Shown here in pieces: positions 29 through 42,853 of a stretch of DNA of 64,000 nt (position 1 is its first letter; each line of letters opens with the position of its first letter). The position numbers and the translations under genes were made by a program. The notes below the pieces were generated by a model. That model saw only the letters and a list, made by a program, of their open reading frames with translations, ran no database searches and was not told the origin of the DNA. The stretch is taken from the IMG/VR virus record IMGVR_UViG_3300035156_000206, positions 227,968 to 291,967 of that record; one strand, given 5' to 3'.

Positions 29-154
29 CGATGTCGATACTGCCGAGGACTTGCGGTACCTGCGCACCATTATGACGATTGTAAACTCAAACCCGCCGAA
101 CGTACGGCGGTCGTGATAAATACCACGATCAATACTAGAACGGAGCAAAAATTA

Positions 155-3487
<3,333 letters not shown>

Positions 3488-5715: not shown

Positions 5716-6786
5716 TCAGTACTCGTTGGTTACTGGCTCGTAAGGTGGCTTGATGACAGCACGGTCTTTGCGATTGTGCATGATCGATGAGATCAGCGCG
5801 ACGACAATGAATGCTGCACCAATTGTTCCCGATACCAGCTCGGACATGTGGTGGAATGTGCTGATGAACATGATCGTTGCCAGAGCACCAATTGCGTAGA
5901 ACGCACCGTGTTCAAGGTATCGGAATTCAGCCAGCGTGCCCTTGTCGACGAGATACAGTGTCATTGACCGGACGAACATTGCACCAACACCCAGGCCAAG
6001 CGCAATCACGAGCAGGTTGTTTGTCACAGCAAATGCACCAATCACACCATCGAACGAGAAGGACGCATCCAACACTTCGAGGTACAAGAAGCCCATCAGA
6101 CCGTTCTTTGCAACCATCACGGCCGTGCCGTTGGTAACAACTTCCTCTTCCTCGTTACCAGTGAACAACTCGAGGCTATCAACAAGCACGTATGTGATGA
6201 TGCCAGCCCCGCCTGCCATGAGGAACGAGATAGCTTCTGCAGGGATCGCAATATATTTGCTGACGATGTACAGGATAGCCATGGTAATGACGATCTGGAT
6301 GGATTCAGCATTGCCGATCTTGGCGAGCGGTTTCTCAATCATAGCAACCCAGTGCGTATCTTTCTCAGCGTCCAGAAAGAACTTGAGGAAGACCAACATC
6401 AGGAATGCTCCACCAAAGCCGGCGATCATGGAATGGGTTGCGGTCAATGTAGCAGCGTACTTGGCAGGATCATTCATTGCCATGACACTAACATCCCACA
6501 TGCCCATGCCTGTCGTGATTGCCACGATCAAGATAGGGAACACGATCCGCATGCCAAATACAGCGATCACCATACCGACGGTGAGGAACATCTTGCGCCA
6601 GAATGGCGTCATTTTGTTCAACTGCTTTGCATTTACCACCGCGTTGTCGATAGACAGCGATGTTTCGAGCAGACCCAACATCAGGACTGCGTAGAGGCCT
6701 GGCATACCACCGAAGTAGTAGCCCGCCCCTACAGCCAAGATCGTGAAAACGAACGACCAGTTAAAATAGCTGAGGGTGGACTTCAT
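5716..6786 (-). CDS. DUF475 / TerC-like integral membrane protein
   Basis: LETSLSIDNAVVNA, FLYLEVLDASFSFDGVIGAFA and YLEHGAFYAIG motifs. Confidence 0.9.
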   Translation of the reverse strand: MKSTLSYFNWSFVFTILAVGAGYYFGGMPGLYAVLMLGLLETSLSIDNAVVNAKQLNKMTPFWRKMFLTVGMVIAVFGMRIVFPILIVAITTGMGMWDVSVMAMNDPAKYAATLTATHSMIAGFGGAFLMLVFLKFFLDAEKDTHWVAMIEKPLAKIGNAESIQIVITMAILYIVSKYIAIPAEAISFLMAGGAGIITYVLVDSLELFTGNEEEEVVTNGTAVMVAKNGLMGFLYLEVLDASFSFDGVIGAFAVTNNLLVIALGLGVGAMFVRSMTLYLVDKGTLAEFRYLEHGAFYAIGALATIMFISTFHHMSELVSGTIGAAFIVVALISSIMHNRKDRAVIKPPYEPVTNEY

Positions 6787-6790
6787 GGTA

Positions 6791-7576
6791 TTAGGCGCCC
6801 GTCTTTGCTTTGTACCATTCGATGAATTCGCGGTTCAGCAGCTTGCCGTACAGGTCTTCATCGGACATATTTTCGATCTGGTTGGCATTGAAGAAGCCAA
6901 CATTGTCGTACTTGTCTGCCATGCGCTGCAGGAAGCGGAACGCGCAGCCCGAACCTGGGTCGCTGATGCCGATGAACTGGTAGTAGACGGCGGCATCTTT
7001 GAATTCTTCGAACAGCGTTTCGGTGGCCGTTTCGTCACCATTGTCACCATCGGTTACGATGATTGCGTAAGCTGGTGGCTTGGCTTTACCAGTAGCAGCC
7101 GGGGCAACAGGCTCAGGAGCCGGGGTCGCTTTGCCAAACAGCTTGCCGAGGATGCCCTTTGCTGCGGTAGTGGCGCCGGCAATACTGGCCGAGACGGCAC
7201 TTGGCTTGTAACGATCGTTGATCAGGCGCAGCAGTGGCGAATAGTTGGTGCCGGACCAAAGACGCAGGGAGCTGTTGTTCAGGATATGCTTGTTGACGTA
7301 GTCACCGAACATTGATTCTTTGACGTCCGGTGCTTCTTGTGCGTTTGAACCGAACACGAATGCATCGAGCGTTGCATTGTCGTCGAACTTCATGGCCAGC
7401 GGGAAGACGCGCTGCACGGTGTTGTGCATGACGCCGCGCGAGAACAACCCTTGGGCGGAGCCGGACACGTCCAGCGAAATGCTGACCTGGGCACAGATTT
7501 TCGGTGCCGAGCGTTTCATCAGGATGATATCGACTTTCTTGCGCAGGTCGATGAGGTTTGGTTGGTCAATGGCCAT
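6791..7576 (-). CDS. Ter-associated vWA domain protein
   Basis: MIDAS motifs DVSGSA, GTNY and IIVTDG; YYQFIGI. Confidence 0.88.
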   Translation of the reverse strand: MAIDQPNLIDLRKKVDIILMKRSAPKICAQVSISLDVSGSAQGLFSRGVMHNTVQRVFPLAMKFDDNATLDAFVFGSNAQEAPDVKESMFGDYVNKHILNNSSLRLWSGTNYSPLLRLINDRYKPSAVSASIAGATTAAKGILGKLFGKATPAPEPVAPAATGKAKPPAYAIIVTDGDNGDETATETLFEEFKDAAVYYQFIGISDPGSGCAFRFLQRMADKYDNVGFFNANQIENMSDEDLYGKLLNREFIEWYKAKTGA

Positions 7577-7578
7577 GG

Positions 7579-8727
7579 TTATTTCCTTTGGATAAGTTTG
7601 GTTTGCAACTCTTTTTGCATCTCGGCTACGCGGTTTGACACGAGCTTACGATGTTTGGCACCTTCTTCGGTGATCTGGAATACTCCCTGGATCCCCGAAA
7701 TAAGTTCTGATTGGACATGCTCGATCGTTGTTAGATCGATAATGCCACGCTGACTTTGTTGCGCAACCGCAATGGACGTCTGCTTCAGCTTGGTAGCTGT
7801 ATCGCGAGCCATTTGGTTGGTAAAGTCATTGATTTGGGTTGACAGCTGGGCACCACGAGCTTGCTCGTCTACCATCATCCCGACCATGAACTGACGCTTC
7901 CAGTTCGGGACAACGTGTGCCTTCACGAGCTTGAACTGCTCGATCAGGTGAACACCATTCTGTTGCATCAAGCGAATTGCCGGTGCCGTTTGATAGGCAG
8001 CCATTTTCAGGCGCTCGAAGTTCGATGCCTTCATGTCGAGACTTACCAAATAGTTCTTGGCATCATTGACTTGTTGGACATCGTAAGGATCTGGGTTGGG
8101 GCCAAGGCTGGCTACGAAGGCATCGGTCTCGACCTGCAGCTCTTCAATCGCCAAGCGGGAAGCAAGCACGAGCTTGTCCAGAGCATGGTACTGATCCATG
8201 TTGGCTTCGTACAGGTCTTCCATGATGTCGAGTCGCTTGCTGATGCCCGAGGAGAATACATCCACCTCATTGACGATCTTTTCCACCTGGGTGGTAGCCA
8301 AATCAAATTGGCCAACGACGCGATCTTTTGTATTGCGGAATTTGTCGAGCCAGCCACCAATGACAGGCAGGCGGCTCTTCTGGTTCAGCACACCAATGTT
8401 GATACCTTTGGCTGCGATGATGATGTTAGTGAGCTTGTCACCAACAAAGTCCAAATCGCTGGACTTGCTGTGTTGCAGCATATTGTCTGCCATATCGGCA
8501 ATACGATCCTGCACATCATCACCGAACGCTACCAGAGCCGTAGGATCTACCTTCACCAGCTGATCCTTGAGCTTACGGATCTCGGCCATTCCTTCTGAGC
8601 TGTACTTGGCCATCGCCGTGTTTAATACAGAAGGACTACCGTTCAGCGAAGCATTTGTCGCTACAGCGGATGAGCCAAAAGGACTCGATTCGCTTGTGCG
8701 CGCAGACTGCGATTTGAACTGTTTCAT
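7579..8727 (-). CDS. telA: toxic anion resistance protein TelA
   Basis: Coiled-coil with AFGDDVQ, QTAPAIRLMQ and VPNWKRQ motifs; start at 8727. Confidence 0.85.
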   Translation of the reverse strand: MKQFKSQSARTSESSPFGSSAVATNASLNGSPSVLNTAMAKYSSEGMAEIRKLKDQLVKVDPTALVAFGDDVQDRIADMADNMLQHSKSSDLDFVGDKLTNIIIAAKGINIGVLNQKSRLPVIGGWLDKFRNTKDRVVGQFDLATTQVEKIVNEVDVFSSGISKRLDIMEDLYEANMDQYHALDKLVLASRLAIEELQVETDAFVASLGPNPDPYDVQQVNDAKNYLVSLDMKASNFERLKMAAYQTAPAIRLMQQNGVHLIEQFKLVKAHVVPNWKRQFMVGMMVDEQARGAQLSTQINDFTNQMARDTATKLKQTSIAVAQQSQRGIIDLTTIEHVQSELISGIQGVFQITEEGAKHRKLVSNRVAEMQKELQTKLIQRK

Positions 8728-8814
8728 TCGATCTCCCTTAACAATGACATCATTATACGGATGGGCTATACGAAAAGTCAACAAATATTTCTGCTAACTT
8801 TGAAACTGAAGGGT

Positions 8815-10059
8815 CTAAGCCAGAATTTGTTTCAGGGAGGTGAACGATTGCTCGATTTCAGCCAATACACCTTTCTTGCGAATGAACTGCTTATCCATCT
8901 GCAAGTCGGCGATCTTGGATGCCGAGGATGTCTCGAGAGCGGACATCAACACAACACATTGCTGTTTCCACGTGGGAACAACTGTCTGCGATATTTGTTG
9001 AATTCGATCTGCCTTGTCTTTACTTGCCATCTGCAACATTCGGATCGCAGGTGCATTCAGAATAACTGAGTGGGCAAGCTTTTCAAGTTCAGTGACCTTA
9101 CGCTCAAACCGAGTAACACTGTCACGGAAGTATGCCAAGTCCTGCCCAGCAAAAATGTTGGTAGTATCGACTGTCTTTTCCATTTCAGGAAGAGTCTTGG
9201 TGAGGTGACGTTCTGTAATGATCTTGCCAGCAATAACGTGCAGGTTCAATAAGGTGAAGTTGTCACGATTGTTCTTGAATACATCATCAAACGAATCAAT
9301 CAATTTGAGCAGTTCAGACACGCTAGACTTCAGTTCCACAACCAGCACGTCCACTCTATTGATATTGTTTTGGAACTTCTGTACAACTTCGTTAACGGAA
9401 GGTACGTACGCTCCTTGACGGATCCAACGCATCAGACCAGATTCTTGTGGAGTGGTGAGGATGGTGGTGAGCTCTTTGGATGCTTCCATTGTGATCAATA
9501 GGTCTTGGATCTTGTCATTGACCTGGGAAGTCTTACCAGATGTCTGCTCTTTGATGATCCCATCGATCAGCGTACCAAACCGAACGCGCTGCTCGTCGGA
9601 ATAATGCAACACGTAGGATGCGTCTGCAATGTCGGCAGCATCAACGATGTTACGTACTCGAGCTATGTCTTTGTGGGAGAGTTTAACACAAAGTGGGTGG
9701 TCGCGGTAGAATGGATCCACCACATCAACACCAACAGCTTTACTCGGGAAAAGTACTTTCCCGGCAGTGCCCTTGGGAGCAGGCTTAGGTATAGGTATAG
9801 GTATAGGTATAGGGGATTTTGGTGCCCGTTCGAGTTCCATCCGCTTCTGCAATTCCTCCCGGACCATGCGCCGTTGTTCTTCGAGGCGCAGATGTTCTTC
9901 GTTGGTCATTACCGATTTGGTAGGATCGTCTACAACAGGAGAAGGCTTTGGTGCTGGAGTAGGCATAGTCCGCGCAGGAGCGGACTTGAATACCTGCTTC
10001 GGTTTGTTTGGTTGTGCCATGGTCGTTACTTTATTTGGGAAGAGCGGTTTCGGTTCCAT
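8815..10059 (-). CDS. TelA-like paralogue with Pro-rich N-terminus
   Basis: APAIRMLQ and VVPTWKQQ match the adjacent TelA; (GGTATA)n repeat encodes PIPIPIP. Confidence 0.7.
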   Translation of the reverse strand: MEPKPLFPNKVTTMAQPNKPKQVFKSAPARTMPTPAPKPSPVVDDPTKSVMTNEEHLRLEEQRRMVREELQKRMELERAPKSPIPIPIPIPKPAPKGTAGKVLFPSKAVGVDVVDPFYRDHPLCVKLSHKDIARVRNIVDAADIADASYVLHYSDEQRVRFGTLIDGIIKEQTSGKTSQVNDKIQDLLITMEASKELTTILTTPQESGLMRWIRQGAYVPSVNEVVQKFQNNINRVDVLVVELKSSVSELLKLIDSFDDVFKNNRDNFTLLNLHVIAGKIITERHLTKTLPEMEKTVDTTNIFAGQDLAYFRDSVTRFERKVTELEKLAHSVILNAPAIRMLQMASKDKADRIQQISQTVVPTWKQQCVVLMSALETSSASKIADLQMDKQFIRKKGVLAEIEQSFTSLKQILA

Positions 10060-10613: not shown

Positions 10614-10946
10614 TTAGCAGGTGAGAATGTTCTTCCCAATGCCTGGCATCATCGGTGGATTGACGTCTACTGGATGATACGGAAACTGTGGGTACACCGG
10701 GAGGACATTAGGTGATGGTGCCTGCTTGTCAATCTCCTTCATCAGGCGCTGAAGCGCTTCATTAGGAGACACCTTAACTGTACCTGGTGCTACTACCGCT
10801 GCTGGCTTAGCCAATGGCGGTGTTGTTTTTGTCAACACAGTGTCCAAATGTTGACAAATCGATAACCATTGCTCTGGTGTAGGGACTTTGTCCCCCGCCA
10901 GCTCAACGAAACCTGTTAACCAATATGCGAATTGTTCTGGGTTCAT
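10614..10946 (-). CDS. small phage protein (MNPEQFAYWLTGFVEL type)
   Basis: ATGA overlap with the ligase stop codon. Confidence 0.75.
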   Translation of the reverse strand: MNPEQFAYWLTGFVELAGDKVPTPEQWLSICQHLDTVLTKTTPPLAKPAAVVAPGTVKVSPNEALQRLMKEIDKQAPSPNVLPVYPQFPYHPVDVNPPMMPGIGKNILTC

Positions 10947-11980
10947 GCTATTTCCTTTCCGATGTTTGCGATATACCAATCTTTACCTACACGATTGACC
11001 TTGCCCATTACTTCTTTTGCGACCAGACCACTTGCTTCAATGGTATCCAGTTCTTCTTTGATGACGTCCGAACCCAGGAACTTCAGGAATGTTCCGATGT
11101 TCTTCACATCATCAGCATCTAGGCCCATTTCGACCACTTTGCCCTTCATCTGCATCAGACGGTTCTCCGTAACCACTTTGGTTGCGAATTCGTTGATGCT
11201 GTTGACCTTCTCCACATCCACCTCAGCCAGAACTTTGACCTTCGATGCCGAGTGCTTCTCGCCTTTTACTTTGAACAGAAGTCCACGCTGGTAAAAACGC
11301 TCGTCTGTGTCTACACAGCTCCAAACAATGCCTTCACCTACGCCATTGTCAACGCCAAAGTGCTTAGCTACTGGGCACTCTGTTTCGACCTCAATTGTCA
11401 GTTCAACCAGTTTGTTTTGGCTCAGCTCAGGGTTGGTGAAATCAATGTCCATCTCCCAAGTTGGGAATTCGAAGATTGAGTACACGTTCTGTGAACTGAA
11501 TGCTTCGCCCATTGCTGAGAAGAGTTCGTCCTGGATGTTTTTGCCTAGGTAGCGAGTTGTTTCGCCCGTGCCGTGACGGATACCAAAGATCACAAACATC
11601 TTTGGTAAGCCACTGATCCCAACACCCTTTTGGATGTTGCCACCGCACCACTCACCGTAGATCGTGAGGGTTTCATCAGTACCCAGGCCGGCCAGTTGGC
11701 GGATATTGCCGAAAGCCAGTTCCCACATTGCTGTACGGGTGTGGACATACTGAGCAAACCCTGCATTGTCACTTTCAGGTGTGATGATGCGCTCACGCGA
11801 TTGAGCCCAAAGTACACCGGACTCTTGCACCACTGACGAATTGGTTCCGTGCAGCTTAACAGTTCCACGGAACTTCAGCACCGGAGCTGGGATTGTGTGA
11901 TAGTTGCACATATCACGGACGTGTTTGACGATCGAGCGAAATTGGTCGATCGATGGGTATTTAATGTGTTCCATGGTCAT
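10943..11980 (-). CDS. Rnl2-family RNA ligase
   Basis: Motif I TVKLHGTN, IYGEWCGGNIQKG, FVIFGI, GEGIVW, FKVKGEKH. Confidence 0.88.
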   Translation of the reverse strand: MTMEHIKYPSIDQFRSIVKHVRDMCNYHTIPAPVLKFRGTVKLHGTNSSVVQESGVLWAQSRERIITPESDNAGFAQYVHTRTAMWELAFGNIRQLAGLGTDETLTIYGEWCGGNIQKGVGISGLPKMFVIFGIRHGTGETTRYLGKNIQDELFSAMGEAFSSQNVYSIFEFPTWEMDIDFTNPELSQNKLVELTIEVETECPVAKHFGVDNGVGEGIVWSCVDTDERFYQRGLLFKVKGEKHSASKVKVLAEVDVEKVNSINEFATKVVTENRLMQMKGKVVEMGLDADDVKNIGTFLKFLGSDVIKEELDTIEASGLVAKEVMGKVNRVGKDWYIANIGKEIA

Positions 11981-12177
11981 TCTCCTTGTTTGGGGACCCA
12001 ATAAAATATGGGATTGTTTCGTTTGTGTTGGCGTTGCCGCTCTTCTACGCCGTACCAATAGGTGCCGCTCCATTCCATCAGAAAGCTCACCACTCCACAC
12101 CGCAGTTGCATCACTACAATATAATGCCCCGGGTTGATTGGTGTTCTTTCGTATATCCCAAAGCGGCGGTTACTCAT
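11977..12177 (-). CDS. hypothetical protein
   Basis: ATGA-coupled on both sides. Confidence 0.6.
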   Translation of the reverse strand: MSNRRFGIYERTPINPGHYIVVMQLRCGVVSFLMEWSGTYWYGVEERQRQHKRNNPIFYWVPKQGE

Positions 12178-36614: not shown

Positions 36615-36909
36615 AAAGAAGCACTCGAACGCGTGCTGCTACGCCTAATGCTCTAAGGGTCTTGATAAGCATCTGCTTGGGCTTTTATCCCCTATTACCC
36701 GCACATTAAGTCACCGGCTTGGCCCGCGTGACACAGCATCCCCGAAACATCGCGATTGAATCGAGTTGACGCTTTACCTATCAAACTGTACTTGTCCTTC
36801 CCCTGTGGTTATACGGTCTAAACGCACCCTGGGATCGGGCGGACACGGCTCCACTTGCAACTCATTAAAGATGGCTGCCCTTAAGCCAACTGCATACGAG
36901 CGCTTCTTT
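36615..36909 (-). ncRNA. 295-nt stem-closed ncRNA with a 23S H43-like element
   Basis: 13-bp closing stem AAAGAAGCGCTCG/CGAGTGCTTCTTT; contains GTTGGCTTA-AGG-GCAGCCATC-TTTAATGAG. Confidence 0.65.
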
Positions 36910-36925
36910 AGTACCACTAAACTAG

Positions 36926-37009
36926 ACCATGTACCGGGGATTCGAACCCACGTTAATCGCCGCTTGACCTGTTACCATGAACCTTACTGTGAGGCGATTA
37001 CATCCATGG
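36926..37009 (-). ncRNA. tRNA-like RNA lacking canonical D and anticodon arms
   Basis: CCATG/CATGG ends, T loop GGG-TTCGAAT-CCC, AATCGCC/GGCGATT stem. Confidence 0.5.
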
Positions 37010-37046
37010 AGTCCGTACATGACTTAAAAACTCGTATTACAAATTT

Positions 37047-37234
37047 TATAATGGTCGGGCTCTTCAAAATATGCATATTGCCTGGGAGGGAGTCAAACCC
37101 TACCGTCTCTCCCAGTAGTCGCCTAAAAGGCTTTCTGGAAGCATCCATTGTCGCTGGACCACATGCTACACATTTCGATCTGGCCAGATACTCAACAGTG
37201 TCTAGAATTTGTTGAGCAGAGCCCGATCATTATA
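37047..37234 (-). ncRNA. 188-nt stem-closed ncRNA
   Basis: 17-bp closing stem TATAATGATCGGGCTCT/AGAGCCCGACCATTATA. Confidence 0.55.
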
Positions 37235-40879: not shown

Positions 40880-40955
40880 TGGAGGGGCGGGGTGGAATCG
40901 AACCACCGACCTCCTGGATTAACCCTGGCGCTCTCTCCCCCGAGCTTGCCGCCCC
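40880..40955 (-). tRNA. non-canonical tRNA with 6-nt anticodon loop GTTAAT
   Basis: GGGGCGG/CCGCCCC-T-CCA, D and T arms intact; identity not assignable. Confidence 0.5.
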
Positions 40956-42778: not shown

Positions 42779-42853
42779 TGGTAGGGCCGGAGGAGCTCGA
42801 ATCCTCTTTTGCTGGTTAAAAGCCAGCTACTTCACCGTTAAAGTTTCAACCCC
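42779..42853 (-). tRNA. tRNA-Lys(TTT)
   Basis: Loop CTTTTAA, ACCA end. Confidence 0.92.

Follow-up and report, generated by a model that had tools for sequence, protein, structure and literature searches.

A family of phage RNAs with the fold of the GTPase-associated centre of 23S ribosomal RNA

The last 64 kb of the 291,967-bp virus record IMGVR_UViG_3300035156_000206 (IMG/VR; estimated completeness 84%), a stretch of 64,000 nucleotides (nt) to which we refer as the window, carries an RNA gene at 36913-36611 on the minus strand. The core of this RNA is a structural copy of the GTPase-associated centre (GAC) of 23S ribosomal RNA (rRNA), that is of helices 42, 43 and 44 (H42-H44; Escherichia coli positions 1051-1108), split between the equivalents of U1090 and G1091. 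Hundreds of phage loci encode related RNAs, and we have almost no doubt that they form a real RNA family with the GAC fold. A first-pass annotation of the window, made from the sequence alone, had proposed a non-coding RNA containing a copy of H43, the L11/thiostrepton loop; our analysis supports this proposal and extends the copy to the whole H42-H44 junction.

Results

The window RNA is about 303 nt long, and a covariance model scan of the 292-kb genome found no second copy. A model derived from 30 other members, with the window left out, matched 36901-36623 (-) over its full length (41.8 bits, E=1.2e-13). Read 5' to 3' on the minus strand, the gene begins with the H42-equivalent strand of a terminal stem, UACUAAAGAAGCGCUCGUAUG (36913-36893), which pairs with 36631-36611. 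This is followed by an H43-like hairpin, GUUGGC-UUAAGGGCA-GCCAUC (36890-36870), corresponding to 23S 1059-1079 and including the A1067 loop, and by a junction, UUUAAUGAGU (36869-36860), corresponding to 1080-1090. A structured insertion of 211 nt (36859-36649) then lies between the equivalents of U1090 and G1091, closed by pairing of UGC at 36859-36857 with GCA at 36651-36649. Beyond it come the linker UUAG (36648-36645), UUUG in most members and nearly invariant in the family; an H44-like hairpin, GCGUAGCAGC (36644-36635), equivalent to 1091-1100 and including the A1095 loop; the trinucleotide ACG (36634-36632), equivalent to 1101-1103, which is ACA in most members and UCA in rRNA; and the 3' strand of the terminal stem (36631-36611), which pairs back to 36913-36893.

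The terminal stem, H42-like and in the rRNA register, comprises 21 pairs, one of them U.U, rather than the 13 bp first annotated, and the RNA therefore spans approximately 36913-36611 instead of the 295 nt originally delimited. The junction is a 10-nt variant in which the foot of H43 is shorter by one base pair, one nucleotide being absent on each side; it recurs in at least eight other members (L007, L039, L041, L101 and L103 among them; loci carry L numbers). For this reason the TGCA/TGCA pairing previously thought to close H43 is not the conserved one: UGC at 36859-36857 pairs with the GCA at 36651-36649, and AUG at 36895-36893 forms part of the terminal stem.

The full H43-like hairpin, GUUGGCUUAAGGGCAGCCAUC, matches the family pattern GUNGGC-UUAGAAGCA-GCCAUC, including the U1060.U1078 mismatch. 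Compared with rrlH of E. coli K-12, our reference (1051-1108 = GCCAGGAUGUUGGCUUAGAAGCAGCCAUCAUUUAAAGAAAGCGUAAUAGCUCACUGGU), it is identical at 18 of 21 positions and has the same mismatch as rRNA; the differences are confined to 1068-1070, where the AGG variant of the window RNA is also seen in L063 and L184. Both the window sequence from which the annotation had argued (36890-36861, minus strand, GTTGGCTTAAGGGCAGCCATCTTTAATGAG) and the E. coli sequence that it had quoted proved accurate against the window and rrlH. Its H43 copy is real, and was understated, as the H44 loop, the rRNA-like 1080-1090 junction and the H42-equivalent stem had been overlooked. Taken alone, an 18/21 match to some stretch of a 2.9-kb rRNA is not significant; GTTGGCTTANNNGCAGCCATC has a single match in the window, and 100 shuffles gave none. 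The likeness is real because related phage loci, in their hundreds, conserve the same hairpin.

These loci were retrieved by pattern scans of IMG/VR, and the family counts below are figures among the matches listed and thus lower bounds. Scanning with GTTGGCTTANNNGCAGCCATC returned at least 118 loci. Only three among the matches listed (L037, L098 and L113) continued as true 23S rRNA, confirmed by Rfam for L113, while the remaining loci read GGRAN-hairpin-N-U-x-UAA-y-GAGU and then diverged. At 50-370 nt further downstream they shared a second motif, UUUG-GCGUARNAGC-ACAC, followed by the complement of the sequence preceding the hairpin. When this 3' motif alone was used in a second scan, new loci were obtained, nearly all with an H43-like hairpin upstream, so that the two halves predict each other. 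A third scan, with the H44 variant GGUGUA..AAC, gave a large further set among the matches listed (L344-L459). The validated collection holds at least 280 instances in 279 loci, 241 of them viral and 38 from the genome collection. The genome-contig scan behind the latter yielded 114 matches, 38 with both anchors and nearly all of these on contigs of metagenome-assembled genomes; the matches in isolates were chance 16-mers. Scanning with the 16-mer GGAAGGACAAGTACAG gave mostly chance matches, and a plasmid search returned essentially real rRNA operons. The IMG/VR contigs, in the hundreds, derive from soil, gut and aquatic samples.

Family members are 105-441 nt long, with a median of about 210, and share one architecture: an H42-like strand, H43 (1059-1079), the junction (1080-1090), a variable insertion closed by a stem, UUUG, the H44 hairpin (1091-1100), ACAC and the H42-like 3' strand. 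The family H44 pattern, G(C/U)GUARNA(G/A)C-AC after the stem-closed insertion and UU(U/A)G, is also that of the window RNA; in this pattern positions 1091-1095 and 1098-1100 were fixed by the design of the search, and free variation is seen at 1096 and 1097. In real 23S rRNAs of Nitrospirota, Clostridia, Actinomycetota and Bacteroidota the sequence is ...UUUAAAGAGU-GCGUAAYAGCUCAC. The GAGU of the phage RNAs is therefore native rRNA sequence, and the insertion lies exactly between U1090 and G1091.

Some loci depart from the usual arrangement. L411 has two family members, and at about 380-410 (+) of L324 a second H43-like hairpin starts just downstream of the first RNA. L154 (IMGVR_UViG_3300020172_006270, approximately 1053-1179, minus strand) has H42 flanks identical or nearly identical to those of E. 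coli 23S, GACAGCCAGGAU ... CACUGGCCGAG, and a second extra hairpin in the 3' strand of H43; its setting is a tRNA array, not an rRNA operon. L154 may be a clue to an origin of the family from rRNA.

Covariation in homologues, which the first-pass annotation had named as a check on its idea, was found at both the secondary and the tertiary level. For the secondary structure, 30 short members were aligned on a structure written from the rRNA model, with shuffles as the control. Standard pairs filled 92.8% of cells, compared with 69.1% in the shuffles, and 184 cells were changed on both sides, compared with 58; the observed score was attained by 0 of 500 shuffles. Sliding the 3' partners out of register reduced pairing to 36-48%. 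Among 173 unique members, all four Watson-Crick pair types occur at each of positions 6-12 of the H42-like stem, which are 65-89% paired. Pair 1058:1080 is U:A in 57 members, G:C in 46, A:U in 43 and C:G in nine, and pair 1057:1081 is A:U in 125 and C:G in 20. The three pairs that close the insertion are 93-99% paired, with full covariation.

Tertiary contacts of the GAC covary as well. The junction mini-hairpin of the ribosome is closed by one trans pair only, U1082-A1086, which is C-G in Haloarcula marismortui (PMC2952862). The junction of most phage RNAs reads N-U-x-UAA-y-GAGU with x and y covarying; these are positions 1082 and 1086, on either side of the invariant UAA, and they are U:A in 61 members, C:G in 51 and A:U in 18. 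In the real GAC, C1072 contacts C1092 and G1099 (PMC2952862). When only loci retrieved via their 3' motif are counted, 102 of the 103 members with C:G at 1092:1099 have C at position 1072, and 63 of the 65 with U:A have U there (Fisher's exact p=3e-44). In the H43 loop of the GGUGUA..AAC RNAs (U1092:A1099), U replaces C at 1072. Across the family, the RNAs also retain the U1060.U1078 mismatch and the variability of position 1061. On the evidence of these alignments, the contacts 1082:1086 and 1072.(1092:1099) are maintained by covariation.

The 1072 triple also separates the phage RNAs from the rRNA of their hosts. All 19 real bacterial 23S sequences examined, including those of Acinetobacter and Ralstonia, have C(C-G) and none has U(U-A), whereas phages ME3 (L485, Acinetobacter) and RSP15 (L481, Ralstonia) have the U(U-A) triple. 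The sequence of the phage RNA thus does not merely follow that of the host rRNA, and this discrepancy also excludes recent host capture or contamination. What selection keeps is the GAC fold, not identity with host rRNA. The nucleotides of 23S rRNA that contact uL11 are 1058-1060, 1062-1065, 1075-1083 and 1088 (PMC1802607); in the family these are conserved or covarying, and the A1067 and A1095 loops are nearly invariant.

The insertion of the window RNA belongs to a subfamily that also includes L009, L237, L324, L331, L338 and L339. Its shared blocks are GAGUUGCRAG, GAUCCCAG, the invariant asymmetric loop GGGGAAGGACAAGUACAG, GGGCNNAGCC and CAAGACCCUUAGAGCA, and the consensus fold shows compensatory changes in 27 of 44 predicted pairs. 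Within the insertion of the window RNA lie an invariant loop, GGGGAAGGACAAGUACAGUUUG (36803-36782), a hairpin, GGGCCAAGCC (36725-36716), and the block CAAGACCCUUAGAGCA (36664-36649), all on the minus strand. The same insertion signature is present in the cultured phages XacN1, ME3, RSP15 and GAP32. The loop at 36803-36782, an asymmetric internal loop found throughout the subfamily and in XacN1, ME3 and RSP15, resembles the two strands of the bulged-G motif of the sarcin-ricin loop (SRL) in permuted order.

A second likeness to rRNA is found in the longest members. The SRL sequence is universally conserved, and in E. coli it reads CUCCUAGUACGAGAGGACCGGAG (rrlH). Allowing at most one mismatch, GUACGAGAGGA was matched 14 times in 239 unique insertions, against a shuffle mean of 0.6, and nearly all matches come from the class with the longest insertions (320-366 nt). 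The matched sequences form hairpins, (A)GUACGAGAGGA(A/G), with complementary flanks and UUAA after them, at a conserved place in the insertion; carriers are L028, L063, L109, L152, L267, L351, L352, L360, L409, L432 and L437. In these longest members, both rRNA elements of the GTPase docking site are therefore copied. No SRL copy is present in the window RNA, which has a different small hairpin at the homologous place, and most members likewise lack one. A blastn-short comparison of the insertions with other 23S regions gave 38 matches, against 25 for shuffled and 23 for reversed sequences, without clustering; beyond the SRL-like hairpin, the insertions thus have no surplus of likeness to 23S rRNA.

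We compared the RNA with the known RNA classes. No family of Rfam 15 matched it, either across the whole window at the gathering threshold or in the surrounding 1-kb region at E<=10. Among 20 related loci, Rfam 15 found only tRNAs, one GOLLD and, elsewhere, one permuted transfer-messenger RNA (tmRNA). The large-subunit (LSU) rRNA model RF02541 had no match at E<=10 in the 1-kb region, in which the flanks are tRNAs, and did match the true 23S controls L113 and L484; our family model scores E. coli 23S 1047-1112 at 60.7 bits. A 23S rRNA gene is thus ruled out, since the sequence and fold of H42-H44 are present without LSU context or an LSU match. A ribosomal protein leader such as L10_leader is ruled out by the tRNA-Gln gene downstream, by the lack of a uL11 or bL12 gene and by the lack of an Rfam leader match. 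GOLLD (RF02032) and ROOL (RF03087), suggested as leads by the first-pass annotation, gave no match at the gathering score or even at E<=10, and the detection of GOLLD elsewhere in L017 means that this search works. A tRNA or tmRNA is likewise ruled out, with no cloverleaf or tRNA-like domain detected by ARAGORN or Rfam. A search of the full-text literature found no paper describing the RNA family. Being none of these classes, apparently undescribed and unannotated in its carriers, the GAC-like phage RNA is, in our judgement, a new kind of element.

Three further RNA features came from these searches. The GOLLD RNA of L017 (685-1176, minus strand) shares its tRNA array with a family member, and the permuted tmRNA of L007 (6723-6944, minus strand) lies about 140 nt upstream of its GAC-like RNA. 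MZ092003.1 (L484, Paenibacillus phage Pd_22F) contains at least 1.6 kb of genuine bacterial 23S near the record end (83175-84808; Rfam LSU, 1465 bits). This is host contamination or packaged host DNA, and several other small records labelled as phage are likewise rRNA.

Family members are closely tied to tRNA genes. Within 1 kb of members, 533 of 536 tRNAs are on the same strand and three on the opposite strand. For 54 of 236 members, the start of the H43 hairpin is no more than 40 nt from the 3' end of a tRNA, and the next tRNA begins as little as 92-107 nt after H43. No consistent protein neighbour was found: the top clusters, GIY-YIG and HNH homing endonucleases, occur at no more than 14 of 173 loci. 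Cultured phages carry the RNA too, as scored by the family model: Pseudomonas phage pf16 (97 bits, between tRNA-Asn and tRNA-Pro), Xanthomonas phage XacN1 (91 bits), Cronobacter phage GAP32 (86 bits), Aeromonas phage 4_4572 (85 bits), Ralstonia phage RSP15 (70 bits) and Acinetobacter phage ME3 (62 bits). All of these matches are intergenic DNA, unannotated in the GenBank records. BLAST with a typical member also retrieved Pectobacterium phage CBB, Serratia phage BF and several Erwinia jumbo phages; BLAST with the window RNA found no match among GenBank phages.

The window, part of the genome of a jumbo phage, shows the same setting. Its DNA was recovered again, at even depth, in the biocrust metagenome run from which the record derives. 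ARAGORN identified 23 tRNA genes, all on the minus strand, at 30.3-43.8 kb of the window, and Rfam found one more that ARAGORN had missed (42782-42853, minus strand), bringing the phage total to 24 and confirming the annotated position of the RNA among tRNA genes. A tRNA-Gln gene (36597-36521, minus strand; ARAGORN and Rfam) starts 13 nt downstream of the terminal stem, and its 5' processing would free the 3' end of the GAC-like RNA. On the other side, a tRNA-like remnant (approximately 37010-36926, minus strand), with a T-arm-like segment, GGGUUCGAAUCCCC, and possible acceptor pairing, ends about 12 nt upstream of the RNA. It received no ARAGORN or Rfam call and its fold is not better than that of shuffles, and we have therefore rejected it as a bona fide tRNA and regard it as a doubtful part of the RNA unit. 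For one tRNA of the array (40880-40955, minus strand), ARAGORN left the anticodon, reported as two bases, undetermined (tRNA-???); unusual or suppressor-type tRNAs may be present.

Two open reading frames that overlap the RNA, 36766-37215 (+) and 36774-36917 (-), were rejected as genes, having no PHROG match. Scans for promoters and terminators around the RNA gave no signal above shuffles, and a search of the phage genome for uL11 and bL12 genes found none. An RNA ligase gene at 10943-12100 (-) (Pfam PF09414; PHROG 548, E=2.5e-64) suggests that the phage has RNA repair capacity; in XacN1, the GAC-like RNA directly follows a gene for a 2'-5' RNA ligase. Elsewhere the window encodes a tellurite-resistance-like cluster (5716-10059, minus strand), with a DUF475/TerC membrane protein and two TelA-family proteins, and a 1124-residue protein with seven collagen-repeat stretches (113-3487, plus strand), probably a fibre.

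No RNA sequencing runs of this phage were found. The RNA of a relative is represented in one leaf-litter metatranscriptome by three contigs, each 151-152 nt long and with 87-95% identity to the window, that cover 36620-36674, 36779-36868 and 36801-36904, and the flanking non-tRNA DNA is absent there. This hints indirectly, and weakly, that the relative's RNA accumulates.

Discussion

Taken out of the ribosome, the 58-nt piece of rRNA still binds both uL11 and thiostrepton tightly, and the A1067 and A1095 loops take part in binding thiostrepton and EF-G. Munishkin and Wool (1997) reportedly found that EF-G also binds oligoribonucleotides of the GAC and of the SRL, and the Draper laboratory is said to have obtained ligand binding by synthetic GAC fragments outside the ribosome. 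Judged by its conserved contact nucleotides, the phage RNA would probably bind uL11. We propose that it is transcribed together with the tRNAs and cut free by the nucleases that process them, which fits the data on strand and spacing, and that its long terminal stem would then shield it. Once free, it would fold like the stalk base, bind host uL11 and show the factor-binding face off the ribosome. As far as a free GAC-fold RNA acting through ligands of the ribosomal stalk base, this chain of steps has our guarded preference.

What the RNA would gain the phage is a more tentative matter. The GAC and the SRL are the two classic toxin targets of the ribosome. The toxin Tre23, for example, ADP-ribosylates H44 at 1095-1098 and blocks EF-G (PMC8661411). 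The role that we favour, as a working hypothesis held with some reserve, is that the RNA may be an anti-toxin decoy that protects the ribosomal GTPase centre by drawing away ribosome-attacking enzymes or small molecules, such as Tre23-type ADP-ribosyltransferases, nucleases and thiopeptides. It would then be the rRNA counterpart of phage tRNA arrays, which offset attacks on tRNA, and its location, in tRNA arrays and close to genes for RNA repair, is in keeping with a general defence of the translation apparatus. In its widest form, the proposal is that a free-standing copy of the factor-binding site is encoded by many phages, in particular by jumbo phages that have tRNA arrays. Together with host uL11, this copy would form a pseudo-ribosomal particle that intercepts molecules directed at the ribosomal GTPase centre, be they immune toxins, thiopeptides, RelA or translational GTPases, and the RNA would represent a new class of viral counter-defence or host-takeover RNA; on this we are evenly divided.

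Several considerations weigh against the proposed mode of action and role. No conserved protein partner or defence-related gene was linked to the RNA among the 173 loci, and the expression evidence consists of three low-depth contigs of a relative, from a library in which DNA carry-over is possible. The insertion adjoins A1088 and most members have A for U at 1101, which may alter the junction and ligand binding, and since the H42-like stem is without the kink-turn region, binding of uL10 is doubtful. A decoy must also outcompete tens of thousands of ribosomes, and sequestering uL11 or elongation factors would hurt phage translation as well.

Two other explanations share the stalk base as the site of action, and we regard both as unlikely. 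The RNA could be a sponge for uL11 that blunts the stringent response. RelA activation depends on uL11; if free or exchangeable uL11 were captured, RelA would not be activated, and partly uncharged phage tRNAs would therefore no longer trigger (p)ppGpp synthesis. Conservation of the complete uL11-binding site, co-location and co-orientation with tRNA arrays, and the lack of uL11 and bL12 genes in the phage are all in keeping with this. However, uL11 already assembled into ribosomes would need to exchange, and ribosomes without it translate slowly, at a cost to the phage too. A sponge would also leave the SRL-like hairpin of the longest members unexplained, and conservation of the A1067 and A1095 loops exceeds the needs of the uL11 C-terminal domain. 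Alternatively, the RNA-uL11 particle could be a miniature factor-binding site, in keeping with the near-invariance of the 1067 and 1095 loops that EF-G contacts, which titrates, regulates or futilely activates a translational GTPase (EF-G, EF-Tu, IF2, RF3, BipA or HflX) or another stalk-base ligand, with the GAC and SRL copies cooperating in the longest members. GAC and SRL together form the GTPase docking site and occur together in 12-14 long members, and the reported binding of EF-G to the isolated oligoribonucleotides would favour the idea. It is made doubtful by the window RNA and most members, which have no SRL copy, and by the harm to phage protein synthesis that would follow from titrating essential elongation factors.

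A cis-acting element, either a processing or punctuation signal of the tRNA polycistron or a leader for downstream genes, would be consistent with the tight packing of the window RNA, 12-13 nt from tRNA-like elements on either side, and ribosomal protein leaders are known to mimic rRNA. Neither uL11 nor bL12 is encoded in the genome, the next gene is tRNA-Gln and no Rfam leader matches; moreover, rRNA-identical loops and tertiary contacts are needless for punctuation, and both ends meet in one helix, as in a free-standing stable RNA. We therefore consider a cis-acting role very improbable. We give hardly any credence to a functionless relic or artefact, whether a captured host 23S fragment, rRNA contamination or mis-assembly. 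The core is nearly identical to rRNA, in L154 even with E. coli-like H42 flanks, and some public phage records do hold true 23S DNA, as that of Pd_22F does, but hundreds of divergent copies keep their fold by compensatory changes. They are flanked by tRNAs and phage DNA and have no match to the Rfam LSU model; the U(U-A) triple of ME3 and RSP15, where the hosts have C(C-G), shows that these are not recent host copies; and the window contig was reproduced in its source run at even depth.

If action through stalk-base ligands is the correct reading, this would be the first case in nature of viruses encoding a functional rRNA domain as a free-standing copy. The spare or decoy translation parts of phages, so far tRNAs and a few ribosomal proteins, would come to include rRNA, the GAC would be a battleground between phage and host, and undiscovered host effectors against H43/H44 and the SRL would be suggested. 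The carriers of the RNA include cultured phages of Pseudomonas, Xanthomonas, Ralstonia, Acinetobacter, Aeromonas and enterobacteria, in all of which it is unannotated, and because culturable phage-host pairs exist, its function is directly testable. The family is also a natural experiment on the GAC fold, which tolerates an insertion at 1090/1091 and an isosteric U(U-A) triple.

The closest relative of the phage RNA is the GAC of 23S rRNA itself, with which it shares H43, the 1082-1086 U-turn mini-hairpin, the H44 loop, the G1055-C1104 stem register, U1060.U1078, the 1072.(1092:1099) triple and the uL11-contact nucleotides. It differs in being a free-standing phage gene of 105-441 nt with an insertion of 50-370 nt between U1090 and G1091, in having A for U at 1101, and in the plain helix that replaces the rest of H42 with its kink-turn. 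The U(U-A) triple class, common in the phage RNAs, occurs in 0 of 19 bacterial 23S sequences. Extraribosomal imitation of a ribosomal protein site is also seen in the leaders of ribosomal protein operons (L10, L1) and in plant P5SM, the 5S rRNA mimic of the TFIIIA pre-mRNA. Those elements are cis-acting in the regulated mRNA and imitate rRNA loosely, whereas the phage RNA is virus-encoded, nearly identical to an rRNA domain, apparently trans-acting and without a linked ribosomal protein gene.

Among phage RNAs, GOLLD and ROOL, large and ornate RNAs of phages and prophages that often neighbour tRNAs, are likewise structured and non-coding, although neither is known to copy rRNA, and stable RNAs species 1 and 2 in the tRNA cluster of T4 are structured phage RNAs as well. 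Phage PhiTE encodes a pseudo-ToxI antitoxin RNA (PMC3475682). Like pseudo-ToxI and the phage tRNA arrays, which counteract host systems in this way, the GAC-like RNA, itself located in tRNA arrays, is a phage RNA that imitates or replaces a host RNA; unlike them, it imitates an rRNA domain that cannot simply be swapped into the ribosome, and its decoy role is hypothetical. The synthetic GAC and SRL oligoribonucleotides of the ribosome-in-pieces approach likewise present an isolated GAC, and SRL, outside the ribosome. These are laboratory constructs, whereas the phage RNAs are a natural gene family with an added domain.

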